DNA of 64,000 nt from Macrostomum lignano (Eukaryota). The position numbers were made by a program, and so were the translations under genes. Shown here piece by piece: positions 2,298-64,000 of the stretch. The notes beneath the pieces were generated by a model, which did no database searches, was not told where the DNA came from, and saw only the letters and a list, made by a program, of their open reading frames with translations. The stretch covers positions 1-64,000 of the forward strand of contig NIVC01001526.1 in NCBI GenBank assembly GCA_002269645.1. The letters run 5' to 3'. Position 1 is the first letter of the stretch. Each line of letters starts with the position of its first letter.

Positions 2298-3582
2298 ATG
2301 AACGACCCACTGACACCAGTTTTCTACAAAATTAACAAGCCTATTTTGAGTGATGATAGCACAATCAAAGCGACACAAGTTAGAGTTCCGAGTCACGAGA
2401 ACCAGAATGAAACTAATTTGGTCCAGGTCAAACACTGACATTTACATACAATGGATGTTCGTCTCTGGTTAGTGTGCACAGTCTTAAGAGCGGCTTCCAT
2501 ATGACATTTCAATTCAAGACAAAGGTGGTGCGGATGCGGCTCGTGCTAACGTTGACAAGCATGATGCGGATGTGGCTCTGATCAGTAACTTTTGGGCGTA
2601 CATGTTCAAGGAGTTTAGTGTATCGAATGGGAGCACTGAGTTGGAGCGAATCGCCAACTTTGGAATTGTCTATGACGCTCATTGTTTGATCGAGAATCCT
2701 GATTTTATTCAGTTGGGAAGTGGTGCAGGTTTTATTGCAGACGAAAAAGAAGGAGATATCAATGACAGTGGCTATAAAAATAGGAAGAAGAGATACAACT
2801 ATGCTTTGCAAGGTGCTGATGATGCTGCTAAAAACCCGCTGTATCGGTCTGTTGATGTATTTGTACCATTGAGATTCATGAGTGGATTCTGTAATACATT
2901 TAATCGACTGACTAGTAACTTTAGCTACACATTTAGGATGACTAGAGATGATCGCAGTAGAGTGTTGTGGACTGGGGCGGACCACACAAGGATGGAGGTG
3001 AAGCTAACCGGAATCGAGCTGTATTTGGAAGTCATTGAGCCAAAGACTGCACTAAAAGCAGACTATCTTAAGGCAATAGAGAAGGACATTGATGTTGCAT
3101 ACACAGCCTACATGTGTCGAGATGAGCGAAACGAAACTAGAACAAACATCTGCATTAAAGAGGGATCATGCAGCAATCCAAGGTATATTATTATTAACAT
3201 GAGAAACCCAAATAGCATTATACGCTACATGCATGGTGACGTGCGGTCCATTCAGCATGAAATCAGTGATAATCTTTACCCTGCACTGCCACAAAATGGA
3301 GATTTCAGTCAGAACAAGATTAGCAAATTTTATAGCGAGTTGGTCGACTTGGCTGTGAAAGAGAACAATGGAATTGCTATCACTGCTCTTCAATATGGAA
3401 CTCTATATCCAATGTTTGGCGCTGATGTGTCTGCCAGACAAATGCCTACTGATAACAGCCCTGTGAATATCGTGACCAACATTGAGAGGACTGTCGCAAC
3501 ACCCGTGGACTTGTACATTATCTATGCATTTGAGAGGAAGGTGAAGCTTAACATGATCAACAATTCATCCAGTAAAGTTTAA
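2298..3582 (+). CDS. Polinton major capsid protein (PY, double jelly-roll/hexon-like), ~428 aa after repairing 2 single-base losses
   Basis: MNDPLTPVFYKINKPILSDDSTIK...NETN / FGPGQTLTFTYNGCSSLV...FQFKTK / GGADAA...VALISNFWAYMFKEFSVSNGSTELERI matches the Polinton MCP N-terminus. Frame changes fall at aatttg (~2417) and acaaagg (~2521). Confidence 0.82.
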
Positions 3583-3606: not shown

Positions 3607-4469
3607 ATGGAAGCTATAGCCGAAAGACTAAACAATATTATTTCGCACTCCAAGGAGAGCATTCCTATTACAATAACTGGGCGGATTAATGACTCAAACG
3701 GGATATTTGTTCAAAAATTAGAGCAGGCGATTAGCCTGGATCCAGGTGCTAATTACCATGTCTATCTTAACGACTTCACTGGTTGGTCAAACGTTCCCAA
3801 TGTGACGGCAGCAAATAATAAGTTTTATTACAAATGGAAAGGTGCAGCAGCAGAACCTGTGGTATTCCCTGTGAGCACGCAAAGTGTGGATACCTACAAT
3901 TACTTTCTAGAAAACGTCTTTACTAAAAGAGGCCATTTTGAGACACCTGATATGAGTAAGCCAGAGAAGAAACTGTTCCCTGTTAAACTAACCTATGATC
4001 TCACTGTAATGAGAGTGGTCATGCAAGTTTACAAAGATGCGGAGGTTGAGTTTAAAGATGACACTTGGTATAGGGAATTGGGATTCGTGAAGAAAGTTTA
4101 TAAGGCAGAATCCACAGCGCGGACTGTCACTCAAGCATCGGGGGCCGTTAGCATGGCCGGGAAAGTGTACGCGGTTTGTTCTTAGCACCCAATATAGCAG
4201 ACATTGTAAAGGGTTTGAATATTCTAATCAGAACTAATCTCAGTCTTGATTGGGTATTTAAGGGAAAGCGAACTAATATTTTGTACAACATCTCCAACTC
4301 TGTAGCTGGAGGACAGATGGTGGTAGAGAAACCAAATCCAGTGAAAAGAGTTGTATTGAGTAATAAGGAGATTCACGAGATTGTGCTTCAGTTTGAGACT
4401 GAAGATGGGATGGGCGTTGATTTTAATGGGGAAGAGTTTGTATTGACGTTAATCATTGAGAGAATGTGA
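3607..4469 (+). CDS. Polinton minor capsid protein (penton, PX), one frameshift at ~4175
   Basis: C-terminal ORF NILYNISNSVAGGQMVVEKPNPVKRVVLSNKEIHEIVLQFETEDGMGVDFNGEEFVLTLIIE is the characteristic penton C-terminus. The N-terminal ORF ends LGFVKKVY. Gene lies directly downstream of the MCP. Confidence 0.85.
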
Positions 4470-43235: not shown

Positions 43236-43704
43236 TCAAGTATTGTGTCATAACGTATATCAACTTCAATTTTCACCTCCTGGGTATAAATCAGGATGAT
43301 AGGAAAAGTTACTTACCCTCTCTGAAGGCGGCAACTAATCGTAGCATTGCTGGTTTAAGATTATGCTAATAAATTTAAATTTAATGCTCAAATCTAACTG
43401 TTTGATGAGCATTCCCACACACTAGCGCATTGAATGTCCGTGTATAAATGGGCTGGTCGAACCTCCCACATGGGGGGGGGACAGACGGACTAAGATATGA
43501 CGGCTCACTAAAGGCGCCAGGTAGAATACATATTACCGCTACAGCCAACACAAGTTGTAATTGCAGGTATTACAAAACAAGCATTAAGCGACGAAGTGCT
43601 ATCAATATCTAAACACAGGACTAAATTCCAACAGTGCGTAACAAAGTGCAAAAATTTGATTACTAATGTCCAGACAGCACGCCAAGAATGAGATAAGCCC
43701 TCAC

Positions 43705-46700
43705 CATTAGTTGGCTCGTTCACAACCACAGTGGGGTTAGCATCCGAGGAAACCGTAAAGCCGCCAGTTTCCTGTCGTTGATACTCCGGTTTTCGAGGCG
43801 TTTTACGCGGTGCCGCAACTGGCGCATCCTTGCCGGTTGTTTGTCCAACGGTTAAACCGGTAATTGTAGGCCGCCCAGCATCACCAACTAGATGTTTGTT
43901 GGTGTTTTCAACCCATCGATTAATGCGAGTATCAGCTGGTGCGTCTTCCAACTGGCCCTCCTCATTATCAGAATCGGCTTGTATTTCTTCATCTTCAGCT
44001 TTCGTTGGCTCTGGCGATATGCGCCTATTACTAAAGTGAAGAACCTTTGGTTTCTCTTTCTTAGAACGTTTAGTCTTTTTCGGCTTCTCTGTATCTGTTG
44101 ACTGCTTCTCTTCTTCAACTGGTTTCGTTGTTGCATAAACTGTTGGAGGCGGCGTTGAAGTTCGCGAAGGTGACACGGATGAGCCAGATAGATGATGAGG
44201 CCGTGTCTGCATAGATGCGACATCAACGCACGGCAGGTCTTGCATTTGTGATTGCTGCTGCTGAACTGAGACTGGAGAAACGGCTCGCTTTGACGAATAA
44301 GATGGGGCTGCATAAGCTACCAGCTCTGGTACCGCTATTTTCTCCTGTTGATTTTGCTGATGGTTGTCAGTTGAGCGCCAGAGCTGCGGCTGCGATACAA
44401 TGTCTTTGCCTTCGGGACGCGAAGAAATGGGCCGAGCTGTTTTATATTCAGTACTATGCGAACTTTTAGCATATATATCTAGGCGTTCAATATTGTCTTC
44501 GATATGCACGGGTTCAGGTTCAACTGGGACCTCATCCGCTTGTCGATTGACCCCAAAAAGTTTGCGGCCTTTTTTCATCTTCTGACTGCGATGGTCCGTT
44601 TTGGCATGACTTTCAGAAACTGGTTCTGCTTCAGCGCCAACTGAGTCACCGTTAGAGTCGGTGGGCGCTCTAGGTTTAGAGATTTTTAAACTAGCTCTGT
44701 TGGCGTTGCTAGCAGTTTTAACTAGCTGATCAACATTTGCATCTTCTGGACTGCTCTTGGGTCGCTTTTTTGTTTCATCTGCAGCAGCTGTTTTTGATTT
44801 TCTTCCAGAAGAAGATCGAAACGATGATCGTAGGAGCCTTGTTTGTGGCGGCGGCTCACTCTGTTTGCTTGCTTCAGATTCTGCATCAGATGGCATAGCA
44901 GCCTCTGGTCGCGGATCCTTTTCGAAATGTTTACTTTTGCGTTTTTTACTGTCTTCACTCAGCTGCGAAGACAGTAACTCACTGAATTCACTCTGCTCCA
45001 CCGGTTGTTTAGGAGACGGTACACTCTCAGTGTCGTAAATTCGACTTTGCTCTTTCTTGCTGGTACTTTTGCTCTTGTTGTCAGACTGAGCAGGTTCGGC
45101 TGATTTGGGTGTAACCTCGGAAACTTTTGAACTCAAAGGTGGCTTCGACAGAGGTAAATCCGACTTGCCTTCAGTCTTCTCAACCGGCGATGGCATGCCC
45201 TCGGTCTTCTCAACCGGCGATGGCAAAGTTGAGGACCTACTTTTTTGACCATCTTCTGTTGCTCTTATCTTTGCTTTGTGCTGCTGCGATTGTATGGACG
45301 TCTTTTCGAAAGATTCTTCTTCAAATTCAACATTTGATCGCTCGGTTGAAGTTTCAAGTATTGAAGACTTTGAACGATGACGCTCTTTTGGCTTACGGTG
45401 ATCCTTTTTCTTTTTGCCCTTTTTCTTGTTATCACTATCCGCACTTGCAACAGTCGGTGGTTCTGCTGGATCAGCTGAAGAGGCTTTAGACTTGCTTTGT
45501 GTTAACACTTTACTTTTAAGATTAGATTCTTGTTCAGTCGTAGAGTCTTCACTAACAGTAACAAAGTTGTCAGTTGAAAGCAGCTGGACTGTTTTGGCGT
45601 GAGTGTCCTGACCACGAATTAACTGGGAATCGGTCTGAGCAACCTTTTCCACTTGAGTAACAGCTGGGAGTTTAACGGCAGATCTGTATTGACTGGATGA
45701 AGTGATCTTCGGAACAGCAATATCCTCTTTGGCTTCATGGGAAAATCTGGATTTTGGCTTAATAGTCTTATCGTTATCAGAAGCTCCACTGCCACTCAGA
45801 TCGTCTTCTTCTGCAACAATAGGTGCTTCGGAGATAGATTTCTTAGGCGATGGAGGTCGGACTAGGATTGTATCTTGGTTCGAGAGATCTGATTGACGAC
45901 TTGGAACAGTAACCTCAACGTCAGTCGATTGTGAATTAATTGATGTGGAAGCCTGGGATACTGTCTCTTCGTCGATAGTTGCCAAAATATGACGCCTTGG
46001 TAGATACATATCTTCTACGGGATGAGATTGGTACCACTCAGCAGCAGCTCGAACTGTCTCACTGTAATCCTCATCTTCATCATCATCATCAGATTCTGAA
46101 GAAGCAGACTCTGAGGTGCCTTCTTGGACAAGCAAAGAAGATATGGAATTCTCATCGGCAATCAAAATGCTGATAGGTGGCTGCTGATCGATATGACCAG
46201 TCGAAAAAAAGAGTTGCTGATCACTTAGCGAACCTTCGTCCACTACAACGCTAGGGCTTCCTTCGCTGCTACTATTTTCTTCGCTTTCCCTTTCATCCTC
46301 CGCTTCTTTTAAGCTAGCAAGACTGGTCGGCAGTACTTCGTGCGGTGGCGGTTTCTGTGGTGTTTTCTGTTCCTTTGGTGGCTTTGACTTTACTTTTTTC
46401 AAAACTTCTTGCAATTCATACTGCTTCTCATAACCAGTATCGTAGTCTCCGCTACCATCGGACTCGGCACTGGATTGGGATGAATCCTCTGAAGTGGCAC
46501 TAACAATACTACCAGTTACCGCGGCTGGTAATCGCTTTGACTCGTATCGCTCCGACAGAGTTGAAATTTTTAACTCTGCGTCCTCATGCAGGTCATTTCC
46601 TTTAAGTCGCTCTACTTGCTCTTTTTCGCCTGAGGCAGTTGATGGCAACAAATTCTCTTGTGCTCGATCATACCGCAAAGTCTCAGATTTACCAACAGCA

Positions 46701-49635
46701 TCGGGATACAACCACTTGCCTTGTTCTTCGCTTGTTTGGGTTTTTAGAAGCCTTTCTTCTTCTGTGCGCCTACCTAATTCAGAGTCCGAAATAAAGTAAG
46801 AACGATTTTCTTGCGACCTGTCATAATGCAACATTGCCTCATTTTTAACCAAGCGAGGACTAAATGGTTGCGGTTCATCTGCATCGACAGCAGTTTCTGT
46901 AGATGGCTTTTCAATAGGCAGTACAGGCGATCGATTGTCCTGGGCGGGATATCGTTCTCCTTGTTCGGTTTGCACAGGCGTAACTTGTTCAGATGTACTT
47001 TTAGCCTTGGAAGAATCAGAAGCTGGGGTCTTTACAGTTGTCGGATCTGAGACCTTTTTGGTCGGTCGACCTTTTTGATTTGAGCTACTTTTGGCAGGCT
47101 GAAACTCAAAAACAGCTTCTTTTTCCATTTGGCGAATAATGGGTGCAACTACAGATGCCTCTTTTGGCGAAGGAGCAGAAGGGTGGGTTGATGATGCAGT
47201 TGAGGATTGCTCTTTTTGATAGACTACTCGCTCAAGCTGATCAGGCTCCACTTCAAAACGGAAGTCACTAGGACTAGGTGGCAAAGCATCCTTTTCGATC
47301 AAATCTTCGTGCTCCTTGCGCTTTACCTTGACAATACCAGAATTGACCAATTCCTGATATGACTTTCGCTCTTCTGCTGTTTGCTTCCGCATGGCGCGTC
47401 GTACTTCGTATTGTTCAGCGCGTCGCTTTACAATTCCTGGAGAAAACTTTTCATCAGCAGTGCCGCTATCTTCATTTGTACTGGTATTAGTAGTTACTAC
47501 TGTCAGTTGAGCAACTTTTTGACTAGTTGGCGTTGTTTTTATAGTTGCAGGCGTTGAATCCGTTGCTGTTGTCGTCTGCGAAGTTCTCATATCTACTTGA
47601 TCAGATCCTGATTGCTGAGGAGTTGGCAAAATAGGAGACAATGGGTTGTCCAGATATTGGCTGGCTGTGTTCCTCAAAGGCTCTACAGTAGTTGCAGCTG
47701 ACTCATCAATGCTACCGTTGTCTGATGATGCCTCAGAAGGTGCTTTGGAACCTCGGGGAGAAACATCATCGTAAATTGGCTCATGGATTTTAACATAAGA
47801 ATTCGCAGCTGGATCGCGAACGTAAACTGTGTGATAACGTGAATTACTGTGGCTTTTCTCACCACGCTCTGTGTTAAGACTAACGTTAGATACGTTTTCA
47901 CTGTCGGCAACGTCAGCAGAAAATTCTACTGTGAGGATTTCGCCTTGAGTTAAGCGCCTATCAGTCGTAACGGTTCGCTGAAAGACTTTAATAAGAATCT
48001 CGTCTTCCTCCATCCTATTCTTTGGTCCGTCGTACAAATAGCTGTAAAATCCCTGTGGGCGCGTCGATTTTTCGTCATTTGAGTCTGATTCATCCGAATA
48101 ATAGGGCTCGGCTAGAACCTCCATGCACATTTTTTCAGAAACAGACAGACGAGCCGACTGCTTTGGGGGACAGAAAACTGATAACGAGTCAGTAGTTGCA
48201 ACGCTAACTTCTTCCAACATAGTAGCATTAGATTCAAGCTGTGTACTTTGTGGTTCCTGGACGTTCCGAGGCTTTTCGCTTTTCGTCCTCTTGCTGTCTA
48301 AGAAGGCCTCCATTCTTTTTTGCGAATCCGTATCAATGGCCACAGCTGCTCCTCCAGAGACTGTTTCATTGCTTTCTGAATGGACAGAGGAAGCTTCATT
48401 TTTGTCTAATATACGATTCAGTCGTCGGCGACTTCGCTTTTGATCAACAGATTTTTTTGATTGGTGCGACTCCTTTGGTGACTCATGTGGTTTGACAAGC
48501 TTCTTGGGAGCCTTAGATTCCTTCGGCTCAGCTTTAGCATCAAGATTTTCACGTTGCACTCGGTCGCTTATATATTTACTGACAGAAGATTCTATTGACT
48601 TTGAGTGCTCATCAGAGACATAATTTTCAGCTTCAGGTGAAATTTTCTGAGTAAACTCAGCCTGACTCTGAAATTCGCCAAATGTCGCGCCTATCGATGA
48701 TTCGCTTTTCGAGGCAGGATAAGTAGGCGCAAGCTTTGAGGGCTGACTGGCTTTATTTTTAGCCTCAGCTGAAGTGACATTTTCCACTACTGATTCAGCT
48801 GAGTCGGAAGCCACGCTCTCGTCTTCACCGTACAATGCAACGTAAGCAGTAGGCAATGGAAGTGTGATTTCAGAAGACAGAGAGAGATCAACAACCGGAG
48901 GCGATGGATCAGCAGCCGCTGTTGCAGAAACAACAGCAGCAACAGATGAAGCTACAGCGGCAGCTTCAGCAGCAGCTTCAGCGCCATGCTCGCCATCTTT
49001 TTTCAGGAGCATAGAACAGAGTTGATCGTCTCTGAATCCATCGCACGAAAGTATGAGGCTGGCCCATTTGTTGCTCTCGGCAAGATCCGCGACGTTAGCA
49101 CGGCCTGGCCGGCAGTCTGCTGATGGCAGCGCTTGTGCTAAGCAAACTGTCACCTCAACATTCGGGTCAGTAGTGTGGTACGCCTCTTCGTGGGTGACAG
49201 CAACACTTGAACCGTCCGGCATACGGAAAGTTGATTTGTAGACGTGCTCAACACGCTTGCGCCAAATGTCAACCGAAGATACTTCTTCGTGATGCCGAAC
49301 ATGGGCACTGCGAGAGTCTCTGTGCTGCTGCACGGACTCTAGAAGCGATTTTCCACTGCTCAATGAATATTCCTCCAATCCGAGTGTTGTCTCAAATTCC
49401 GTGTTTTCAGAGAGCACAGTCTCAGTCACTCGTCTATCTTCGTTGCGGATAGATAAAAATTCTTGAAAAGTTTTGCGCTGGTTCGGCTTCTGACCAAGAC
49501 GCTCGGAGTTGGTGCGATTTAACTGTGCCGTCGATCCTGTCGCCGATGCCTGCGCTGTTGCGGAAGTCGATGAGGCCGCTGAATTGGGCGTAGCCGCAGC
49601 TGCCATTGCTGCGCTTGGTGACGCTTCAGCTGCGT
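43705..49635 (-). CDS. 5.9-kb giant exon of a ~2,460-aa S/E/K-rich intrinsically disordered protein
   Basis: Uninterrupted frame of about 2,000 codons. Acceptor gtctttttttag| at 49636 and donor G|GTGAGG at 43704 are both phase 1. No globular domain recognised. Confidence 0.88.
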
Positions 49636-49945: not shown

Positions 49946-50462
49946 CTAAAAGTGGATGAAAATGAACAATAAGAAAAGAGAGTACAGTCAGTCATACAAA
50001 AATGAACACACACATTTTTCTTTGGCTTTGTTTGCTCATTTGAAAAAGCGACTGAAGCGAACTTTGAAGAACGAATGAGAATGGGATTGATAGTGAGGTG
50101 GAAAATGAATATAAATTGTTTGCCTGTACAAAGTTAACATTAGTATTCTGCCATACGCGCGTAATTACCAGCACTGTTATTATCAATTAAACCTTAAAAC
50201 TTAATAGAAACATCGGCATAAGTGATAATTTAATTATGCGACTTAAAAAGCCAAATAAAACTAAAAAATACAGACTTTGGGTAAAACTGAAATTGTGAAG
50301 TAGAAGCATTTCAAAGCCAATCACCTTAAAGCTAAATGCTACTGTTGAATAAAAATCGACCAAAGCTTCAGCACTATATTCACTAGGATTATTTTAGGAA
50401 TTCCTCAACAGTTAAAAGACCGAAGCTTAGTATAAAAACTGCTTACTACTCGTACTTACAAA

Positions 50463-50547
50463 GGGCCGTAGCCCAGTGGTCTTCTTATGCGGCAGCTCTG
50501 ATGACACTCTGGTGTGTCAGCAACCAAGGCTCGATTCCAAGTGGTCA
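50463..50547 (+). other. tRNA-like/SINE-head fragment
   Basis: A-box-like TAGCCCAGTGG and B-box-like GGCTCGATTCC; no convincing cloverleaf. Confidence 0.3.
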
Positions 50548-52421
50548 CATAAATTTGGGGCTAAATTGGAATCTTGGCTTGGCTATGCTCATGCAATTAA
50601 CAGCCTTGGGACGCAACCAACTAGGCGCAGTGAATTGTACATGCCTTAACGATAAATAAAGTTCGGGCCACTGTACACTCCTGTGTGTGTTGCTCAGAGG
50701 AGTTGGTGGGATGGACAGAAATGCCTCTTGCCAATTGTGACAAAGTTGCTTAAACCGCACCAGGGTGCACACGACCTCCCTGTCTCTTATAAAATAAAAC
50801 CAAGTTAAAAAACGTCATGAGTTGCCACAAGGAAATTCTCTTGTTAGGAAGTTTATGTAACACAAAAATGGTCTTTAGACTGTTGAAAGTAAATCGTTAA
50901 AAAACTTCAAGTGGTTTCAAAGCCTTTGATTATCACTTAAAAAGTGAAAAGAAAAGCACAGTAGGGAATTTTAGGCTGGCTTTAAGGTAAAAGTGAAATT
51001 CAACTTGATTAAAAGGCTACTTTTTCTATGCAACGCAAAACATGAAAATTGATGTTAAAAAGAGCAAATCTGCAATGTTAGAAATCATATAATTGATTAT
51101 AGATAATTAAAACTACATTGCACACAGAAAAGCTAAATACCTTTTCATATTTTATGCTATTTAAGGATGACACTTACCAAGAGTAAGGGGCATGCACTAG
51201 ATAATCTTGAGTAGAAAACAGGTGTATTTTATATTGTTTAAATTGCATCAAATACATATGGTGAAAGTTACAATATAACTAGAAAACTATATTAGATGTG
51301 TTATTAATTTATTATGATAGTTGCATATATGTTACCAAATAATGAGTACATTAAGTGAAATAAATATTTTATATTTACCAAAATGTAGAATGCTCTACCA
51401 GCAGAAGGAACAATGACTCTCTTGATGTGAAAAGAATGATCAAAACAATTTAAAGTAGATAAAATTTTGATGATATAATATTAATTGCATACCTATGCTA
51501 TACTGATTAAATATAATGATATGAAAAAATTAGGAATTTCTTTAATATTTTCAATAGTGCTAAGTAATGCATTCACTCAAACTCAATCTATTTATCTACT
51601 GTGCTATACAAAAATTTTGTTACAATAATACCCAGAAGAAGAGAAAACACTAAAACAAATTATAAAAAATCCTAGCTAGCATGGATTACATTCAATGCTA
51701 GTTTAATAAATTAGACAGAAGTGCATAATAAGTGTGATATATCAATTAGTGCATAAATTAGGAAAAAATCCAGTTTAAAGTCCAGTCTTTAAAATCTAAG
51801 TTATTAGCAACAAATAACTAGACATTCAAATAGCCATTTTTAATTTAAATAAATCCAGCAACAGAATTTCATACTAAATTTATGAAAACTGGAATACACA
51901 TAGTAACAGCTTTGATTAGTCTTTACTATATAAGGGTTTTATAATTTAAAACCATGGAATCAATATTTAAGCAAAACTAATTAAGATGTGATTAAGATTT
52001 GCACGTCAACATGCTGCAGTAAAAATTTGTTAATTAGAAACAATTTGATGAATAATAAAAAATTAGTCATAATTTCCTGCTGCATTTATTTTATTAATAT
52101 TCTTCTTTTGATAAATTGACAAAGATGCTTTAGCTAAAACTTACAGATTTTAAAAGCAGAAAAGTTATGAATCCAAGTCCAAAAATTGCCTAAAAAGCAT
52201 TTAACAAACTGTATATACAAGCTATTATATGCAGTTTCATAACAATAAGAAACACTTGTGTAACACTAGGAAAAGTAATAATATAAGATAGAATGAATGA
52301 ATAAAAAATGGTAAAAAATGAACCTAGTTTAAACTAATCAACAACAATTACTTTGCTTTTTCATAATTAAAAAAGAAAATAGGTAAAAGGTTAAGGTCTA
52401 AAACAGAAACAATTGACTTAC

Positions 52422-52505
52422 AATTATATATGCTGCAACTTCAGGAATTGGTCCTTCGTCCATTTCATGTTCATTCCAGAAAACATGAAAAAAATTAAAG
52501 GCCAG
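52422..52505 (-). CDS. Candidate 84-nt exon of an unidentified AT-rich multi-exon gene
   Basis: gatttag| LAFNFFHVFWNEHEMDEGPIPEVAAYII |gtaagt, phase 0-0, open frame. Similar candidates near 51379-51420 and 51180-51210. Confidence 0.4.
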
Positions 52506-53659
52506 CTAAATCAGTTAAGGTGTAGTATCCATGGGTTCTTAATTCTATTTCAACAAGACTACCAACTAATAGCAAAAGCTCTTAAAATAGCCTAAAAATA
52601 CTTTATAAAAAGTAGTCAGCTAGGAGCCAAAATAGATAACCTTTTCTTGTTTGTTGGTCTTGTACCATTGTTTCGAACATTGATCAAGCTTCAAATCAGC
52701 CTTGGGCTTGTGATCACTCGTTTTACTTATTTTGAGTAGTAGATAGTGACATAGGAGTTGCCCCAAGATTGTGAGTTCAGTCCATTCTCAAAGAACAAGA
52801 CATCCAGATCTAGGAACTGAGAAATTGCCTTTAAAGGCAAGAATCCTACCACAGGGTAGAGTAGTCTAGACTCAGTCTGAGAAACCCGCCTCAAGGCAGA
52901 ATACCCAGCAAGTAAGCTGTGACCCTCTGATCCTGGGAACGCCCAGGACTGAGAGAATAATATCTTTAGAAGGGTATAGGAATAGGATAGGCAGTGCCTA
53001 AAGACCCCTCAGGCCAGAAAGTACAATAAAAATATACACACTACCAATAGAAGTACATATGCTACCAATAGAAGTATATGCGCTACCAGTGGAAAGGCAA
53101 TTAATAACCAATAAGATCATTAGGAAGAAATAACCACTTTGGTGACAGGATAATCAACAATAGGAAATTGAAAAGTATCCCTGTGACAACTTTGGTGGCT
53201 AACCAGTGGGATTATTTATAAGGACAGAAGTAACCCCTACATCAATTTACTGAACTTTTTTAGGAATATGCTCTTCAACTAAATAGCATTATTACCAAAT
53301 GAAAAACTATGGCTTTTTATTACTGAAAGTATTAGCATCTAATGAAATTAATATATATTTTTATATATATTTATAATTTTATATTATAATCATATTTGTA
53401 TTATATAATACAATGAAAAATCAAATTATTAAGTATAATCAAATAGCCAAGGTATTAAGGTAAGTTTCAAAAATTCCAACCCTAAAAATATAAATATAGA
53501 ACTTTAGCCAGTTGTGTGTGTGCCAATAGGAAAGAAGTGGCTATCTCTACTCTGCATTTGTGATCCTAACAAGTGAATCCCCTCCTTTGGAGGGGAAAAG
53601 GGAAGAACTCCCATCACTGGAATTTCATTCCCTGAAATTCATCAGCTAAATCCTATGAT

Positions 53660-54135
53660 CTTAATCCTCTCCAAATCTATTAAAATCCTCTCTGTGAAAC
53701 AATACTCCATCAAAATCCTCTTTTATGAATAGAAATTCATCAAAATCCTTTCCTTGAAAGTCCTTTCCTTGAAATGCAACTCTACCAAAATCCTTTCCAT
53801 GAAACTTAAATCCATCAAAAGCCCCCTAAGTCCTAGTGTAATGGGAGTCCATCAAAATCTTTGTTGTCAAACAGACAGTCATCAAAATCATCTCTGTAAG
53901 ACAGAAATCTATCAAAATCTTTTCCATGATAGTGAAAACAATCAAAATCCTCTCCATCAAATAGAAATCCATCAAGATTCTATCCATAAAACAGAACTCC
54001 ATTGAAATCCTCTCTGTGAAACTGAAAACATTGAAATCCTCTCTCTAAAAGTGAAAACCATCAAAATGCTCTTCATAAAAAATAAATCCATCAAAATTCT
54101 CTCTGTAAAACAGAACTCTATCAAAATCCTTAGTG
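53660..54135. repeat. Old degenerate ~30-40-bp tandem repeat
   Basis: Recurring CCATCAAAATCCTCTC...GAAA cores. Confidence 0.7.
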
Positions 54136-55095
54136 AAACTGAAGGGCTGAGAGGCTTGCAAGTTTGTTCATTGAATTTTATTGCTGAACTAATACATAGG
54201 GACAATAATAAAACCAATTGAATCTTGACACAGTCTTATCTTAGAGGTTGGGGTGGATTTTTATACAAACAGACCACCAAACTTTTTACCTTAAAAGGGC
54301 TAAAGAAGGTTAAAAGCAGTTTTCTACTTTTTAGGGATCTTAATAAAATGTGAAAATGAAAGATTAAAATAGCCTAAAGCCGATTCCAGAAAATTTTCAA
54401 TTTTCCTAAATAAGTTTTAACATTGACTTGCTAGTATTTTAGGAGGAGTTATCTAACACATATATATATACAAACAATATATCAGTTTTAGTAGAAGTAG
54501 ATAGGTTAGAAATTGAATGCAAATGAGTGACAATTGTTTGATAGACTAGGACTTGCACCACATGGTTTATTGAGGGGTCATCTTAATGAATCATCATCAT
54601 TTATCTTTAGAATATCTTAAATAAAGCAAATCTTCATAGCTAAAATCTTCTTGAAAAAACTAAACAAACTAATCTTATATAGTGCATTCAAATAAGGTAC
54701 TAACACAAAATGCACTGTTGATGTGACAGCTTGATTTGGCTACTTTGATATGAAATTTGAAATTGTAGGCCTAAAGAAATAGGCCACAAATATAAGGTCA
54801 AAAAGATCCATATAATTGATATAGCTTTGATAGTAACAGCTATAAAAAGTAGTCTATCAAGATTACACATACCTACTTTCAATATATACCTGACATATTA
54901 AGCTTTTAGAATGTTTCATAAAGTTCTAGGATAATTTTTTAGAAACTATAAGAATATTTTTGTTTACTGAGATACAATAGTTCCTTTAAATATATTATAC
55001 ATATATAATATATATACTATATAAATATATACTAGAGTAGCTATTAAATAGGTTACAAATTAATAGCAAAGTCCAAACTTATATCTTAACATGCG

Positions 55096-55642
55096 CCATA
55101 GTCTATATCATGTCATTTACGCCGGAGATTTCTGGCGTAAATCTGGTTTGGGATTGGAGGCTAGCGTAAGTGCTTGGCGTAAGTATAGGCCAAAATGTGC
55201 CTTGGCGTAAGTGCTTGGCATAAGTACATAGCATAAATCAAGTGGCGTAAATGTTGGCACAAATGAGATCATTCACAATCAAATATATCACTATAGAACA
55301 TTACACATATGCGTTAATTATGATGTTAAAGAGCAGCATTAAAACAAAGTTCACTAAAATATTGCAGTTTATATAAATGAGATAGCAGAATATCTATTGT
55401 AGGATAGCAAAAGTTTTTTTAGCTTCAAGATGCTTACTTTGATTCTTGATTCAGAATTTGCAACTTGTGAGATTTTTAAACAGTTGCAACTTCTGAATTT
55501 AATTAATCACCGAATTGTGAGGGACCTTTTTTGGGTGGCGTAAGTCAGAGTAACCTTTTTTTGGTTGGCGTAAGTCTGGCATAAGTGCCAAAAAATGTTG
55601 GATTTTTCCTCCGGCATAAGTCCAGCATGATCCGGACTATAG
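55096..55642. mobile_element. Non-autonomous DNA transposon (MITE), CCATAG-type TIR, 8-bp TSD AACATGCG
   Basis: TIRs CCATAGTCTATATCATG.../...CATGATCCGGACTATAG, flanked by identical AACATGCG; internal GGCGTAA repeats. Confidence 0.85.
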
Positions 55643-55855
55643 AACATGCGTAACCTAATTTATATTGGCCATACGACTTAATTTTTTACTAATGAATTTA
55701 ACAATGTCCAATGATAAATTTATATATAAAAGAATCCCTAAAGCAAAAAGTAATACAATTTTAGATTCTTGGGTAAATATTTAGAGTAGGTCTAACTCTA
55801 TGACTTTTATTAATTTAAACAAAGCTAAATACCTTGTCATCTAATTAATTAGTTA

Positions 55856-56552
55856 CCATACTCAGGAAGGTGGCCTGCACGCGGGAATTTTCCCGCATGC
55901 ACAAGCCACGCTAAAATTTTGGCGTGCAAAGTTGGCGTGCAAATAGGGGTCTCAAGCCACGCCTAAATTTTCAGTGTACAAGTTTTTTACTTGGCGTGTA
56001 ACCTTGGCGTGCAATTACAAACTGACAGTATATCAACAAGTCAGATATAGATGTATACACTATATATATACAATATATAAAGTTAAACGTGAACAATTGA
56101 AATTGAATATTGATTAAACCAACTAGTTGAGGCTATAGCCTAGCCTACAGGGCCAGGCCTACACTCTACAGCCTACATTAAAATTAAAATATCCAATGAC
56201 TTTTAAACACTCTTATTTTGTGATAGTGACTCTTGTAGACTTTTAGTTTATTTGTTTCTTGAAATGTGAAGAAAAAGTTTTTGATACTCACTATGTTCTT
56301 TGTAGCGAATTTCCTTTTTTTATATAAACTTTGTTTACTGTAAGTAGAAAATTTATTTAAAAATTGTATCTAATACGGTTAATATTCAAATCACACATAC
56401 ATGAGGCGTACATGATTTTTGGTATTCAAGATTTTTGGCGTGCAACAGAAACGTCATGTTAAGGGTTTTAAAAAATTGGCATACATTGGCGTGCACCAAG
56501 GATTTTTCCATAAATTGATTCCCGCGTGCACTTGCCACCTTCCTGACTATGG
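55856..56552. mobile_element. Non-autonomous DNA transposon (MITE), CCATA-type TIR, 8-bp TSD ATTAGTTA
   Basis: TIRs CCATACTCAGGAAGGTGGCCTGCACGCGGGAAT / ATTCCCGCGTGCACTTGCCACCTTCCTGACTATGG, flanked by identical ATTAGTTA; internal GGCGTGCA repeats. Confidence 0.9.
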
Positions 56553-57794
56553 ATTAGTTACTTACTAATCTATAGGCCTATTCTTTTGGATAATAATTTT
56601 TGAAATTTAACCTTGGTCTACTATAATTTATAGAGACCAGATTGGCTAAATCATAGGGATTCCAAAATCCCAACAATTTACAATCCCAGGTTTGAGAAAT
56701 CCTGAAGGTTTAAAATCTTGGGATCACTAATCCTAGAAAATCCCGACTGAGAGTAATCCCGGGATCCCACTTTGAAGTTCAAAAAAATCCTGGGATCCCG
56801 TCCTGATATCAAATGTATTGAAACATCTGCATCCAGCTTCCACCACGACCACAAAGTAAGTAAAATAGTTAAAATTATTATTAATGATGATATTTATAAT
56901 GATAGCTAATGGTTCAAACTGGTATATTTACGCAATAAACTTCTCTTTGCTTAGTTATTGTACAAATAGAAATAGAAAATTGTTTGATAATAATAAATAA
57001 TATGTATCCATAAAAGATCATAAATTATAATTGATTACAACAATAATAACTTGTTTTAATATAGGTTATATTTTATATAGGGGCCTAGCTAGCTATGCAA
57101 TATCAATGTAAATTATCAAAGTAATGTCATGTTTAATGCCTCGTTACAGTGTTAGACATCACGCAACTGACGAACATGTGACATTAAATTAGGGCCTAGT
57201 AGTACTAGTAGCAATTGGTTAGGCCCTATTGTAAATTCATTACTATTTTTGCTATTGCCTATTCGCTTTAATTGTCATAATATTGTCATTAGTAACACTT
57301 TTTTGCTGGGTATTGCTTTTTATGGCTGCAAAATTCCATATCTGTTCTGATATTCCAAATAAACAGCTAAAGGTTACGCAACTACTATCGATGAACTTAA
57401 ACTACGTCCGATTTATGATGACTTATGCATGTTGCGTATAAAAAACTTTTCTTAAGGAAAAGAACTTAGATTTAAATTATTACGTTAGTTTTAGCAAATT
57501 TAAAAAAATTGCAATGAAAATGTTAAAAAACAACACAAAACACAAAAAATTCAAGGCATTACAACAGTTAAAAGCTTGATTTGACATACTGTGCCGCCAG
57601 ATAAAATCACACGACTGACTTACAAAGGAATGAAAGTTGATGACAATTAGTCTAGTGAGTCGTGATGAGTGATGAGTGATGATTACACGAAATTTAGTTC
57701 TATTTAATAGCAGTGTCAACAAACTTTTAAAAGGACTTGCAAGATGCGGTGTGAAGGCTTCGAAGCTCAAGACGCATGTGCGGTAGCCATGTAC

Positions 57795-58090
57795 CATGGC
57801 TCCCAATGTCAAGGATCTAGTGGTGGATCTAGTGGCTCACAGCGTCAAGGAAAGGTCTGATCTCGTGTGGCTCCCAGCGTCAAGAAAACGGCTGATCTGG
57901 TGTGGCTTCCACGGCCCTGCGTCAAGGGAACAGCTGATCTGGTGGCTCAAGACGTCAAGGAAACGGCTGATCTGGTGGCTCAAGACGTCAAGGAAACGGC
58001 TGATCTGGTGGCTCAAGACGTCAAGGAAACGGCTGATCTGCAGGTGGCTCAAGACGTCAAGGAAACGGCTGATCTGGTGACTCGCTGCTT
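57795..58090. repeat. Degenerate ~33-bp tandem repeat
   Basis: GATCTGGTGGCTCAAGACGTCAAGGAAACGGCT units; one frame reads ADLVAQDVKET. Confidence 0.85.
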
Positions 58091-58533
58091 CAAAACGTCT
58101 CTGTGGCGATCCAGACGTCAAGGAAACGGCACTGCGTGTTAGCGCCAGACCCTTCAAAGAAACGGCTTTGGCTGGCTCCCAGTGTCGAGAAATCGATTCT
58201 GCATGCATGCATGGTGGTTCCCGACGTCAACGATGCGACAGCTCATGGTTGCTGTCCATGCACGCCTAGGCCGGACGGTTTAACCTTAAGAAGTCGGGAA
58301 GGTACGTAGTTTTCGACCACTTACATGTACAACCCAGCGCAGTCGGTTCAAAATATCTATGGCCAGCGCACAAATTCTCTACCCACCGTTGCAGTCGGCT
58401 ATGGGTCGAACTCGACCAATAATAGAAGTAAAGCAAACAAGCTTTGCAAAGATGGCTCGTATTAACAGTAACAACCACAGCAGTAACAAACTACAAACAT
58501 AGCGGGAAAGTTTCATTCAAATTTCAAAAGCAT

Positions 58534-58815
58534 TTAAGCTTTCTCGGAGTCCGAGTCAGCGCTGTCGTTGATTTCAGACTCGTCGGTGTTGGAATCAAGA
58601 CCGAGTCTGCGTTTTTTAGCCAGTAAAGCCTGCGGTTGGAGGTCTTCTCGAAGCCATGCCTTTTGAAACACTTTGGGAATGTTGCGGATTAATATAAAGC
58701 CCCATAGGGCCATGGCTAAGCGCAAGCTTCTGCCCCTATAGGCACGTTTATGACAGATTTCTCCAAAAATGACGACAAGATGTGTCATGAAGTCATTTTT
58801 TGTTACTGATGTCAT
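58534..58815 (-). CDS. Possible small ORF (93 aa) with basic-then-acidic tail
   Basis: Ends KKRRLGLDSNTDESEINDSADSDSEKA*; higher GC than the flanks; no homology recognised. Confidence 0.3.
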   Translation of the reverse strand: MTSVTKNDFMTHLVVIFGEICHKRAYRGRSLRLAMALWGFILIRNIPKVFQKAWLREDLQPQALLAKKRRLGLDSNTDESEINDSADSDSEKA

Positions 58816-60166
58816 TTTTTATGTGTCATGAAAAATGACAAACGTCCTTTTTACAAGTTAATCTGAAAAAATGAAGCGCCTTTTCACCCGCTAAGTATTA
58901 CTGAAGTTTCAAAACTAGTAGTATGATATTAAAGGAGTTATTAGGGCATAAAAATATGACGGGAACAAACAAAAAATACGGGTGATTGCACATACGTAAA
59001 AATGACAAATATGACACACCTTCCGGCTTGAAAATAGTGTACTATAGTATACTAAATTTTTACAATCTTTTTGTTTTTAAAACATTGTAGATGCAAAGTG
59101 CATAGTAGTTATGCAGATAATTGAATAAAAAGTGTTTTGTAGATGAAAAATAATATGTTTTTTCTTGCACCAAAAAATTGCATGTGTTTGAAATATAGTA
59201 TGCTTTGACATTAGTTGGAACTATAAAGAACAGTACGATAGACGACAAAAAGTGCACCTGCTGTAAATTTATTGTATTGAAGATGCGCATCTGCATTCTT
59301 TTAATTTGTACTTCATTTATTCTCATTATATACTAAAAAAGATAGCCTTAATACGCAATATTTTTATCCTTTTTGTTATCTTATTTATTTTAACTCGTCC
59401 ATAAAATATAAATATAATTAATGCCATGAAGCAACACTCAATAGTGGCCTATAATTATAATAACTTGAAATCTTTCTATCACTTTATCACTCATTGTGGT
59501 TATGTTCTAAAAATTATCTGTGCATTTATGCATGTGTAGTCATATAATATTGCATTGAAGTGAAGTTGAATAGTCAAATATTTTATTTATTTTGTTTAGT
59601 TCAGTATAATACTTATATATAAATTTGATTTTGTTAAATCTTAACTTAGTTCAAAGGTAATAAGTGTGTTACCTATAACCTTTAAACAGACAGAATTGTC
59701 TAATGATAACTAAATAATGAAATGAATAATTGGATAATAAATGGTTTTTGTATCTGTACCATTATATTCTCATAACATATCCTATTATTGAATTACTTAT
59801 TTCTATGAACTTCTTGTGGCAGGCTTATTATATATTAGATATTTCTGTTTTAGTGAATAATAAATTAATATGTATAAGCCTATATATAAAGCAAGTTGAT
59901 ATTCAAAGTGCCTATAGTAAATATGTAATAACTATTTATTAATACTCTAATAGCAATGACATATGGAATATAGAAAAGTAAATTAAGAAACTTAAGAAAA
60001 TAAATCTACCTTAGTTGTCTAGCTAGCAAAGAAAAAGTTGATTAATAACTTTCTTTAGGCCTATTATAAATAATTTATTCATTATCCCTATTGGAATAAA
60101 TGTTTAAAACCCGCAAACATGCGCTTTAGAAAAGAGTCAAACTATTTTACCACGCTTTAGGATTAT

Positions 60167-60478
60167 TAGAGATGTTCCGAAAGATCTGCAGTTTCATCGA
60201 AATCAAAATTCGCTAACTTTCCAAAATCAAAATTGAAATTTCCCAAAATCATAATTTAGAAAAATAAAGTTTAGTATGATCAACACTCACTTTTTCACTT
60301 TCAATTTACTGCTTAAGCAAAAAGTAATACATTTATATGTAGTAGAAATTAGTTTATTTTTAGCAACTTTTTAGACACTACCAAAATTTTCACTTTTAAA
60401 TTTTTTTCAAAATTGAAATTTGCTATAAAAAAATTTCAAATTTTGGAAAATTGAAATTGAATTTTTGGAACATCTCTA
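60167..60478. mobile_element. hAT-like MITE
   Basis: TIR TAGAGATGTTCC...GGAACATCTCTA; 8-bp flanks partly similar (AGGATTAT/AGCTTAAT); subterminal AAATTGAAATT repeats. Confidence 0.7.
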
Positions 60479-60692
60479 AGCTTAATAAATTATGAGTGTA
60501 TAAGCCCTTTCCACAGAGGTATTATATCCATTTCCATATATATGTATTTGCTAAAGCAGCAGCCAGTAAGAAAGGGCAGCGCGCGCACAGGCGCTGCACC
60601 TGTGCACGCGCTGCGCTTTAGAAAAATTCCAAAAGTGCGCCGGACATTGTCTGTGGTTTTACAACTTTTTCCTATAGGGTTCATTATTTATT

Positions 60693-60830
<138 letters not shown>

Positions 60831-61543
60831 TTTATTATTTATTTATTAACTTATTTCAATAATGATTAATGATCAGATTAGAAAAGTTGACTTTTAGTAG
60901 GACCTAGGAGGCCAAGATAGTCTAAGTATAAAAAGCCTAAAGATTTAATAAAATTTAATAGTAGTAGATCTAGAATTTCTTTTTGGGAGGTAGTCCAAGT
61001 TTGGGATGCAAATACGAGTATGAGAAATACCAATTTTTAAGCTAAGGGATAGATTTAAAGATAACAAATCAAGCTTAAAGGCATAAAAATTTGTATTAGG
61101 GGCAAAATCAAGTTTAAAAGGTGTAAACTTAGGTTTATAGGGGGTGAAATATGTTTTATCAAGCCATTTTAAGGGAGATCCCCCATGGGCCATCCCCTAC
61201 CCTCTAATTCACCCCTAGAATATAAAAGGTATATTTAAATATAGGCTAATGAATAAAAGTTATATGAGTACTTATCTATAAAATCATATAACAATAAAAA
61301 CAAAAACAATATTATAAACAATTATTATGCTTCAAGCAAAGCCAAGTCCTAGATACAATATAATTATATTTATAGATATAGAAAAAAAGACTTTTTATTT
61401 AAGTAAATAGTAAATATCTTAGTAAATATGGCATTGTAAAATAATGTAAAATAACTATATCAAACAATATAAAAACTACTGCAATATTTTGGGTTTTGTC
61501 ATTATTAAATTTGAGATTTGCATTGAAAAACACTTGCAATTTC

Positions 61544-64000
61544 ATGGTGCAATGGCTAAAGGCTAAAAACTTCTGCAGAGCCACTAGCAGGTTTGACTTA
61601 TCCAAGTTCCTGCAGCAAATGGAGCTGCCTTCAGAGCCTCCAGAAAATGGAGCCTCTAGTTGTAGTCTCTTACAACTACTCACTGATACTCCTATAACAA
61701 TGCATGAAATGGAAGAATTATTTCTGCAAGGTGAATTAATTAATCCAGCTCAGTCGTCTAGCCATCTGGTGGATAAATCTAACAGCCAGGACCTGCATGT
61801 TGAAGGAACAGAAGGAGTGCATGTTGAAGGAACAGAAGGAGTGCATGTTGAAGGAACAGGAGTGCATGTTGAAGGAACAGAAGGAGTGCATGTTGAAGGA
61901 ACAGAAGGATTGCATGTTGAAGGAACAGAAGGATTGCACGTTGAAGGAACAGAAGGAGTGCATGTTGAAGGAACAGAAGGATTGCACGTTGAAGGAACAG
62001 AAGGAGTGCATGTTGAAGGAACAGAAGGATTGCACGTTGAAGGAACAGAAGGAGTGCATGTTGAAGGAGCAGAAGGATTGCACGTTGAAGGAACAGAAGG
62101 AGTGCATGTTGAAGGAACAGTAGTGCTAGAAGTCCCAGATAATCCAGCTCAGTCTGGCCAGCAACCACAGGATTTCGGCCATCAAGGCCTTAAGACCATC
62201 AGAAGTTGGCCTCAATGTCATGCGCGCAATGTAGACTTAGACGCTGATACACCTGACAACATCTGGCCACGGGTAGAGTGTCCTGTTAAGAGTGATAAAG
62301 TTGTCCTGCAACCAAGGCTGTCGGAAGAATCCAACGAAATAATTCAGATTGTTATTGACGACGAAGACGACGATGATTTGGAAAAGTCTACTAAAAGTGA
62401 AAAGACTCCTTTTCGTGCACTGGAGAATCTTGGCGTTAGCATTTCCAGTAACAAACCTCGAAAAGGTATTCAATATGTTTGCCATCTTGATAGCAGTCAT
62501 TTGATTACGGAGTCAAGGATTAAGCAGCACTTTGATCGAAATCATCAGAACTACGAGTTATACGGCTCCTTTGACGAAATCAAAAAAGAATTAATCAAAT
62601 TCAACAATGAACGTTTCGGTTTACCGTCTAAAGAGTCAACGACCAAAAAGTCCACCTCGGCAGAAAGAGCAGGCAATGACTATTGGTGCCATCTAGACCC
62701 AACTCATCTAATTAAACAGTCGAGGTTTGCCGACCACTTTAAACATTTTCATAAAGACAAACTTCAGTCCGAAGGACGCAAGAGCTTGATAATGGCGACC
62801 AAAAAATTTACCAAAGATCGTCTCAATGCTGAAAGAAAGAAAGAGACAAGCAAAATGCATCTGACGAAAGGTGTAGAGAATCCAAAAGATGACGCTGATG
62901 CAGCCGAAGAAAACTGCAGTTCTGATATAATTTGTCCGAAGTGTGACCTTCCTCAAAAAAGCAGTCTTTTCAGCCATTTAACCCACTGGCACGAAATGAG
63001 CGTAGAAGAGGCAAAGGAATCCATTAAAGACATCAAGACGGCGAATGTATCCAACTATGTCCTTCAAAGTTGGAAGTCAAAATCTAGCACCTCTCATTGC
63101 TCTCAATATACGCCAGATGACGAAAAAGACAATTTAGTTCCATCGTTAGAAGATTTCGAAGATTTCCTGAAAAATTTTCCCGGAGGAAGGCTTGCCCAAT
63201 CGACGCGGGCACAAGCACGCAGAGCTATTTCAAAAATTATGTCTATTACCGGAGTTTCTAGTCTGGTCGATATTATTCGCGAGAAGCACCGTTCTAGGAT
63301 TAACGAGTTTTTAACTAGCAAGTCTCAATCTTGCTCCGATGGAACGAAGACATATGTTGAAGGTCTAAAACGTTTTGGAGTGTACCTGAAGAGCTCGTTT
63401 TCTAAATTCGTTTCAACGGCTCAGTTGACCAAAGATCTCGAATCTTTCCTTTTCATCTGTAAGGGTTATGGAAAGTCCCGATTACAGGACAAGAAACTTG
63501 CCGAGTCACGTCGTCGATATGCGCTGGACAAAAGTAGACTGACCGTAAGCGAGCTCAAAACTGTCCTTGATGTTGTCGATTTCTTCTTCGCAGCCGCCGA
63601 ATCTAAGCCTACAGGATCTCGCGAACAAATGATATTTATTGGTCTGTATTTTCTTTTTGGCAAAGGAAACTTTCACCGCGCCGATGCAGTCTCGAATGCC
63701 AAAATGGAACAATTTTTCGAATGGAAAGGCCAACTGGATATTGATCCGCAAGCAATGTTTGAAATCCTAAATCATAAGACGGACAAATTAGGTGTTATTC
63801 AAGTTTCAGTCATCGATATTAAGGAAATTTTATTGGAGTATGGAAATAATCGTGTTGCAAACGGAGCGGTCGCAGCTGATTACTTTTTTGATTATGGTCA
63901 GCTTCAGAACATTGGACTGCATTCTTTTTCAACCTATTTGCGCAAATCTCGAGAAACGTTTCCGATCCTAAATGATTTGAAAACAGTCAACGTCCGTACT
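61544..64000 (+). CDS. Large tyrosine-recombinase (phage-integrase-fold) protein with N-terminal repeats and zinc-finger-like motifs; 3'-partial, >818 aa
   Basis: Frame open from 61445 to the window end by manual translation; first ATG at 61544. Contains the C2H2 [20 protein letters not shown], a core-binding-like helical region ([13 protein letters not shown]...[15 protein letters not shown]), box [22 protein letters not shown], and TVNVR at the window edge. Confidence 0.8.
61793..62120 (+). repeat. 24-bp coding minisatellite (HVEGTEG[V/L])n in the recombinase ORF
   Basis: ~13 units; the one shortened unit loses exactly 3 nt, keeping the frame. Confidence 0.9.

Follow-up and report, generated by a model that had tools for sequence, protein, structure and literature searches.

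The DNA analysed here is a 64,000-nt stretch from Macrostomum lignano (the window) that is identical to positions 1-64000 of contig NIVC01001526.1 in assembly GCA_002269645.1; record positions given below are coordinates on that contig, running on past the window end at 64000. The open reading frame (ORF) that begins at position 61544 is very probably the single gene of an autonomous, recently mobile tyrosine-recombinase DNA transposon of M. lignano, Crypton-like in its working. A sequence-only reading of the window had proposed for this frame the integrase of an undescribed Crypton-like element, of a large cargo-carrying element, or of an integrated DNA virus. The first of these options, in which the integrase is that of a hitherto undescribed animal DNA element of the Crypton-like kind, is supported because of the predicted catalytic fold, the His and Tyr residues found downstream, the lack of internal reverse transcriptase (RT) and RNase H, the defined ends, the near-identical copies and an exact empty site.

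The frame (+1) runs from the ATG at 61544 to 64000 as 819 codons with zero stops, whereas the remaining five frames contain 31-76 stops each over the same positions, and the probability of 819 stop-free codons is ~4e-24 at the local base composition. An in-frame stop lies shortly 5' of the ATG. Beyond the window the ORF is uninterrupted to a stop codon at record position 64876, and the complete gene is a single intact exon with a product of 1,110 amino acids (aa), of which the window holds codons 1-819 (61544-64000, + strand). The unbroken intronless frame of more than 818 codons described earlier was thus confirmed and completed. The full-length protein was recovered at 100% identity by an exhaustive HMMER search, where sequence P0011 plus the initial Met is the 1,110-aa product. 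The earlier description of the gene as hidden holds for the ORF list of the window, from which it is absent because the listing omits ORFs that run off the window end, but not for the public assembly, which already holds a gene model for it.

The gene lies in a mobile element (family A) that starts at 58733 on the + strand and continues through the window end to record position 69237, 10,505 bp in total. The extended ~23-kb locus around this element is referred to as L004. The limits of the element are given by sharp-edged identity to a second copy (9,384 bp) on a different contig at L001 7203-16586, to which it is 99.2-99.6% identical; similarity between L001 and L004 breaks off within one nucleotide at both edges, and the flanks are unrelated. 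The difference in length, 10,505 versus 9,384 bp, is due to tandem-array copy number. The two coding sequences show 0 substitutions, and a 27-nt in-frame repeat indel is the sole difference between them.

Both copies carry the 4-mer CCCC as a direct repeat at their ends (58733-58736, + strand, at the left end in the window; the same 4-mer closes the right end). On the left, CCCC is followed by TATA (58737-58740, +), the putative spacer of a core site, and then by the left 14-bp inverted arm, GGCACGTTTATGAC (58741-58754, +). The right end consists of the inverted 14-mer, whose last two C residues overlap the terminal CCCC. The perfect 14-bp arms are accordingly placed 8 nt (left) and 2 nt (right) from the ends of the element, and as TATA is without a counterpart on the right, the ends are asymmetric. 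There is one match to the arm per end, in opposite orientation, in each copy, and GGCACGTTTATGAC has no other match in the 64-kb window even when 2 mismatches are allowed (expected 0.11). A 9-mer, AAAAATGAC, stands 10 nt inside each arm, with equal spacing on the left and right. The left subterminal cluster (58765-59006) holds five of these motifs in both orientations, the first of them being the one 10 nt from the arm. In the 23-kb locus, 41 of the 42 matches to AAAAATGAC are inside the element (expected 0.63), namely five at the left end, three at the right end, and 33 in or next to two internal tandem arrays (L004 13425-14709, 80 bp x 16, and L004 15428-17089, 190 bp x 8.8), every unit of which carries the motif.

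An empty site was found for the L001 copy by comparison with two sister loci, L013 and L015. Three contigs carry a 74-aa DUF1242 protein, whose gene at the occupied locus lies 3.2 kb from the L001 copy, and the gene order DUF1242, Tctex-1, RING-finger is common to L001, L013 and L015. The interval from the Tctex to the RING gene is 7.6-7.7 kb in L013 and L015, compared with ~17 kb at the occupied locus. The flanks of L013 and L015 are 98-99.9% identical to those of the occupied locus and lack the 9.4-kb insert, such that the two alignments abut. The occupied junction reads flank-CCCC-element-CCCC-flank, and L013 reads flank-CCCC-flank; in L015 the corresponding sequence is CCC (near 4219-4221). 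The loci therefore differ by the exact presence or absence of the element, which inserted so recently that the sister loci still show the empty target.

The copy in the window interrupts a long interspersed nuclear element (LINE). On its left lie one copy of a 61-bp perfect direct repeat (58640-58700), which is the target-site duplication of the LINE, and a 32-bp 5' stub of the LINE (58701-58732, + strand) between this repeat and the left end of the element. The 61-bp repeat recurs at L004 18846-18906 (record 70392-70452), immediately behind the LINE tail and 1,155 bp past the right end of the element; it is unusually long for a perfect target-site duplication. The remainder of the LINE occupies 1,154 bp past the right end of the element, outside the window (L004 17692-18906 including the repeat), and encodes RNase H (PF00075, E=2.2e-9) followed by a weak zf-RVT match. 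It contains one internal stop and is 5'-truncated. The LINE frames on either side are in phase only if 1, 4 or 7 nt are placed between them, which fits one CCCC in the original target. No second copy of the interrupted LINE was present among the loci compared, and the empty site of the window copy is judged from this frame phase only.

A paralogous family (family B) shows the same end architecture with different sequences. Its recombinase is 25% identical to the family A protein, and its three copies (L003, L005 and L006) are 99.2-99.4% identical to one another and end at identical nucleotides in unrelated contexts. The copies at L005 7692-15640 and L006 4399-11902 are within introns of host genes, a UQ_con gene and a TRAM_LAG1_CLN8 gene, respectively, on the opposite strand. 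The left end of family B consists of CC, ATA and an imperfect inverted arm, and the right end of the arm and CC, with CCAT on both sides in two of the three copies. The subterminal motif is RTTACAGG, all 12 matches of which (12/12) fall inside the element; it sits at each end, and every unit of an internal 451-bp x 7 array holds one match. Hence, protein, arms, motif and flanking 4-mer all differ between families A and B, while the layout of the ends is retained. With two family A and three family B copies the ends could be defined from multiple copies, as the sequence-only reading had envisaged, in addition to the exact empty site of the L001 copy.

Across the families, the elements are 7.5-10.5 kb in size and consist of one long ORF, the rest being AT-rich spacer and tandem arrays. 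No ORF other than the recombinase gene reaches 150 aa, and this gene is intact in all five copies (5/5). The small ORFs of the element gave no credible domain, those of the 2.8-kb 5' non-coding part gave no credible Pfam match, and no RT, RNase H or DDE domain was found inside the elements. Split direct repeats and long inverted terminal repeats are likewise absent from the element.

By sequence comparison, the putative recombinase matches no named protein family. Only ten members of its family were found among 1.84 billion representative proteins in the exhaustive HMMER search: the window protein, the 25%-identical M. lignano paralogue (annotated as a hypothetical protein) and eight metagenomic or run-assembly sequences, the sources of which are one environmental metagenome and run assemblies. 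One further relative was found in JGI metagenomes. The accessions of the metagenomic relatives include ERZ23491819, SRR29257315, SRR25569785 and Ga0193947. None of the 58 pattern matches in a collection of 2.9 million viral contigs encodes a relative. The conserved layout of the family comprises a CHHC-like zinc knuckle, a C2H2-like finger, a helical domain, and a C-terminal domain with the catalytic residues.

The window protein carries the knuckle twice, each with the pattern C-x5-H-x9-H-x4-H. Knuckle 1 (aa 313-334; 62480-62545, +) has a weak match to Pfam zf-U11-48K (E=0.011; 6.7e-5 in one relative). Knuckle 2 (aa 382-403; 62687-62752, +) is the family-conserved copy, in which the two distal His are invariant columns, and has a predicted beta-beta-alpha fold with a block-mean predicted local distance difference test (pLDDT) value of 72-92. 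The C2H2-like finger, C-x2-C-x10-H-x4-H (aa 464-483; 62933-62992, +), has its C, C, H and H invariant in 10/10 sequences, and the family profile weakly matches C2H2 fingers in the PDB. The zinc fingers are predicted to fold as beta-beta-alpha units. The zinc-finger-like N-terminus noted previously thus corresponds to two CHHC-like knuckles and one C2H2-like finger. They are followed by an all-helical, putative core-binding (SAM-like) domain at ~aa 534-643 (63143-63472, +; model m7e7ff3800191, helix block-mean pLDDT ~77-93) and by the predicted catalytic domain, the first ~155 of whose ~205 residues are encoded within the window (63536-64000, +).

The set of residues typical of the superfamily, i.e. 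the nucleophile Tyr, a His 9 residues before it, two Arg and a beta-hairpin Lys, is present. The first Arg, R712 (63677-63679), is kept in 9/10 family members and is followed by an acidic residue, D714 (63683-63685). The Lys of the HKT segment, K745 (63776-63778), is invariant in the 6/6 members covering the position. These two assignments agree with those of the box I Arg and the Lys made earlier. The second Arg proposed at that time, R818 (63995-63997) in a TxNxR variant of HxxR, was mis-registered by three residues: the conserved Arg is R821, two codons beyond the window end, and R818 sits at the position of the HxxR His, where five covering relatives have Thr. The local alignment around R818 has a 3-residue indel, and its register is slightly uncertain. 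In type IB topoisomerases, this position is occupied by Lys. The nucleophile Tyr had been expected beyond the window, and Y855 was found there together with H846. Thus, R712, D714, K745 and R818 are encoded inside the window and R821, H846 and Y855 beyond it. R712, D714, K745, R821, H846 and Y855 are kept in every covering member except P0007, a partial relative that has other residues in place of the Arg and Asp. The spacings R712-K745-R821-H846-Y855 are 33, 76, 25 and 9 residues, which are typical of tyrosine recombinases.

Structure prediction is in line with these assignments. The core model, from the zinc fingers to the Tyr, has a mean pLDDT of 77; it places K745 in a beta-hairpin, R821 at the start of a helix, and Y855 in a terminal segment of low confidence. 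When modelled on its own with AlphaFold2, the catalytic domain has a pLDDT of 79.6 and a predicted template modelling score (pTM) of 0.77. In a Foldseek search of the PDB with this model, the top seven matches were all tyrosine recombinases or type IB topoisomerases (prob up to 1.00, TMq 0.44-0.54), in keeping with the fold anticipated by the sequence-only reading. The best match was XerA (E=4.6e-3, prob 1.00, TMq 0.53), and the remaining six were two XerH chains (prob 0.99), an S. aureus integrase, two integron integrase chains and variola topoisomerase IB. After the top seven the probability falls to <=0.10, mostly 0.01-0.04, the eighth match having 0.02. The two-domain (core) model gave a best match in BFVD with E=1.2e-4 and prob 1.00, with named phage integrases next; against the PDB, Cre was at rank 1 and vaccinia topoisomerase IB had the highest probability, both being non-significant. 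Accordingly, the predicted tyrosine-recombinase fold is supported at moderate statistical strength, from shallow alignments.

Movement of the element may be pictured as follows. The recombinase would bind both 14-bp arms, and the element would leave the chromosome in circular form. With the ends joined, the arms would stand opposite one another on either side of a 6-bp spacer (CC+TATA), as in a core site of the lox/dif type. The circle would then recombine with a chromosomal CCCC, and strand exchange inside this microhomology would leave the 4-mer on both sides. The zinc fingers, the core-binding domain, or both may recognise AAAAATGAC as an accessory site, terminally as well as within the internal arrays. 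Excision of a circle and strand exchange at CCCC are inferred by analogy with the Crypton model and with prokaryotic recombinases (PMC3212892, PMC13465315). In the model proposed for Cryptons, a circular intermediate recombines at microhomologies of 4-6 bp (PMC3212892, PMC13465315).

The Crypton groups considered for comparison were CryptonA and CryptonI of animals, which are DUF3504-like, and CryptonF and CryptonS of fungi and stramenopiles. Like a Crypton, the M. lignano element encodes a tyrosine recombinase as its sole enzyme, lacks RT and has a low copy number. Short terminal direct repeats are also present, as CCCC at both ends in 2/2 family A copies and CCAT in 2/3 family B copies; 4-bp terminal direct repeats matching a single copy in the empty target are the signature behind the circular-intermediate model of Goodwin (PMC3212892, PMC13465315). 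In contrast to the element, with its perfect 14-bp inverted arms and symmetric subterminal motifs, animal Cryptons have been reported without terminal repeats of either kind, and no Crypton group has been reported to have inverted repeats. CryptonA recombinases match Pfam DUF3504 (E<=8e-12, PMC3212892), whereas the Macrostomum family matches neither DUF3504 nor any other integrase model, and none of the 9 relatives among the 1.84 billion representatives is a named Crypton protein. The M. lignano recombinase further differs in having the N-terminal CHHC-like and C2H2-like fingers and coding tandem repeats, and in the replacement of the tetrad His. The phyla listed for Cryptons do not include Platyhelminthes (PMC3212892).

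The prokaryotic tyrosine recombinases (XerA, XerH, Cre, integron integrase and phage integrases) provide the best structural matches to the modelled catalytic domain and share with the family the layout of a core-binding and a catalytic domain, the active-site residues and the spacing of these residues. When joined, the ends of the element would resemble the prokaryotic core sites, in which a 6-8 bp spacer separates two inverted repeats of 11-13 bp (PMC3212892). Unlike them, the M. lignano element is eukaryotic and nuclear, its recombinase has zinc-finger N-terminal modules and no significant sequence similarity to the prokaryotic enzymes, and its integration appears to need only a match of 3-4 nt, not a full partner site. 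It is conceivable, though on balance doubtful, that the two M. lignano families are not related to any described Crypton clade and, still active in this laboratory flatworm, make up a superfamily of their own among the eukaryotic DNA transposons that use a tyrosine recombinase, in which the joined ends are lox/dif-like and the 9-mer arrays are 'arm-type' accessory sites read by zinc fingers.

Several observations weigh against assigning the element to a recombinase of this kind. At the sequence level, the curated integrase models (PF00589, PF12012, PF11917 and others) gave no significant match in the family. The window protein had zero integrase-type matches in Pfam and NCBIfam (E<=10), and when the ten family members were compared at E<=1, the sole integrase-type match was Phage_int_SAM_1 with E=0.65 in one member. 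A phmmer search and a profile search of the PDB returned zinc-finger and low-complexity matches only, and no integrase. Comparison of the catalytic-domain alignment with Cre and lambda Int by hhalign was not significant; with lambda Int, the HKT was aligned onto the SKT segment of the integrase at a probability of 0.15 only. The His of the classic R-H-R-Y tetrad is missing, being Arg here and Thr in the relatives. At the structural level, the models rest on 9-10 sequences only, the Tyr-bearing segment has a pLDDT of <50, and the catalytic domain found nothing at E<=0.001 in the PDB by Foldseek. As for the ends, the third copy of family B (L003 16904-16907) has the right flank ATGG, the reverse complement of CCAT. 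The constant 4-bp duplication could also come from a transposase of a different type that duplicates a specific target, and both the action of the recombinase on these ends and the circular junction are inferred steps. In L003, ATGG is followed by sequence that resembles the element's own end.

The main rival to movement driven by the recombinase is that an unlinked transposase of the DDE type recognises the inverted repeats and moves the unit in trans. The CCCC would then be a genuine 4-bp target-site duplication, and the gene resembling a recombinase would be carried along as a passenger or serve some other purpose. Inverted repeats with clusters of subterminal motifs do resemble the ends of many cut-and-paste transposons, an occupied site has precisely one 4-mer more than an empty one, and the HxxR His is absent. 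However, the inverted repeats lie inward of the tips, and the two ends are built asymmetrically (CCCC+TATA+arm versus an arm overlapping CCCC), likewise in family B. The flanking 4-mer is constant within each family (CCCC in A, CCAT in B) and changes along with the protein and the arms. In addition, the only long ORF is that of the recombinase, intact in 5/5 copies, and no DDE domain was found anywhere in the elements. Movement by a DDE transposase is thus regarded as unlikely. It is very unlikely that the unit is no transposon but a host gene, e.g. a domesticated recombinase, copied by segmental or whole-genome duplication, as might be suggested by the low copy number (2 copies of A and 3 of B seen), by the many recent gene duplicates of M. 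lignano, such as the DUF1242 protein on 3 contigs, and by the domesticated Crypton recombinases that are well known in animals (PMC3212892). The duplicated flanks at L013 and L015 lack precisely the unit, with a 4-bp junction, and the copies are found in unrelated contexts (within a LINE fragment, intergenic, or intronic in two different genes). All of them end at identical nucleotides and have the inverted-repeat architecture. In domesticated DUF3504 proteins the catalytic Tyr and Arg are no longer there (PMC3212892), whereas both are present here. A segmentally duplicated host gene was rejected, as it is contradicted by the empty sites L013 and L015.

The two other options of the sequence-only reading, an integrated DNA virus and a large cargo-carrying element, are highly improbable. 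The best fold matches in BFVD are phage integrases, and a sub-threshold double-jelly-roll-like ORF occurs elsewhere in the window (2572-3582). That ORF is 55 kb away, outside the ends of the element, and the unit itself, at 7.5-10.5 kb, has a single long ORF, the remainder being spacer and arrays. With no ORF of at least 150 aa besides the recombinase gene in 10.5 kb, a cargo-carrying element is unlikely, and a DNA virus is unlikely because there is no other long ORF and no relative of the family in the viral contig collection; both were rejected as contradicted by the mapped ends. The Starship elements of fungi, mobilised by a tyrosine recombinase, the 'captain' (DUF3435), are likewise bordered by short direct repeats, and inverted terminal repeats occur in some of them (PMC13465315). 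Starships have the captain gene at one end with cargo genes after it, and the M. lignano element differs from them in lacking a DUF3435 match and cargo ORFs, in its size of 10 kb versus up to hundreds of kb, and in its animal host. The chance that the gene is part of a DIRS/Ngaro-type retrotransposon with RT and RNase H downstream is close to nil. DIRS, Ngaro and VIPER elements encode a tyrosine recombinase and occur in animals, and PF00075 RNase H with a weak zf-RVT match does lie 4.4-5.4 kb 3' of the recombinase stop codon on the same strand. However, this RNase H is outside the unit common to the two family A copies and absent from the flank of L001, as the flanks of the second copy differ; it belongs to the separate, 5'-truncated LINE-like copy that has its own 61-bp duplication and is split by the element. 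DIRS, Ngaro and VIPER carry RT/RNase H, split direct repeats or long inverted repeats with an internal complementary region, and a recombinase matching PF00589, none of which was found in the M. lignano element. A DIRS-type element was therefore rejected, being contradicted by the element boundaries and the LINE context, in agreement with the earlier view that this is not a DIRS/Ngaro retroelement.

The preferred interpretation, a recombinase-driven DNA transposon, is of interest since animal Cryptons are rare, mostly old, and described without terminal repeats, so that the circular-intermediate microhomology model rests largely on fungal elements. The locus offers, in a laboratory-model animal, an element that encodes only a recombinase and has ends defined to the nucleotide, an exact empty site, five intact near-identical copies and a divergent second family in which protein, arms, motif and 4-mer have changed together. 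With exact ends, an empty site and two families, the DNA target of the recombinase and the point of strand exchange become answerable from sequence and structure. If the possible separate superfamily is real, this would be an integrase-style site architecture undescribed for any eukaryotic transposon. As the putative recombinase lineage is invisible to curated models, it is missed by automated transposon annotation. A literature search found no paper tying Macrostomum to Cryptons or CHHC fingers to tyrosine recombinases.

The recombinase has coding repeats at both ends of the protein. At the N-terminus, an in-frame 24-nt tandem repeat of 13.8 copies (61794-62120, +; codons 84-193) encodes HVEGTEG(V/L) units, and at the C-terminus there are basic Gln/Ala/Lys-rich units with KKRGPGG (L004 12635-13205). 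A basic repeat tail is present in the paralogue protein too. Within the AT-rich 5' non-coding stretch of the element, 2.8 kb long, a (TTAC)n microsatellite occupies 60691-60853.

Elsewhere in the window, the 336-aa ORF at 2572-3582 (+), which is 55 kb from the element, has a sub-threshold double-jelly-roll-like match to PF21738 (E=3.1e-5, 23.8 bits; cut-off 27). More than 20 minisatellite arrays with periods of 17-82 nt and up to ~72 copies occupy 4900-41800 and give rise to spurious ORFs of 200-460 aa in several frames. An unbroken 2,032-aa ORF on the - strand (43508-49606) is Ser/Glu/Lys-rich, probably disordered, and without a Pfam match; it belongs to a gene model of 2,473 aa, the 5' end of which is 6.3 kb from the element. 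At 50 kb the G+C content falls from ~46% to ~32% (window 50001-62000) and does not recover across the 5' non-coding part of the element.

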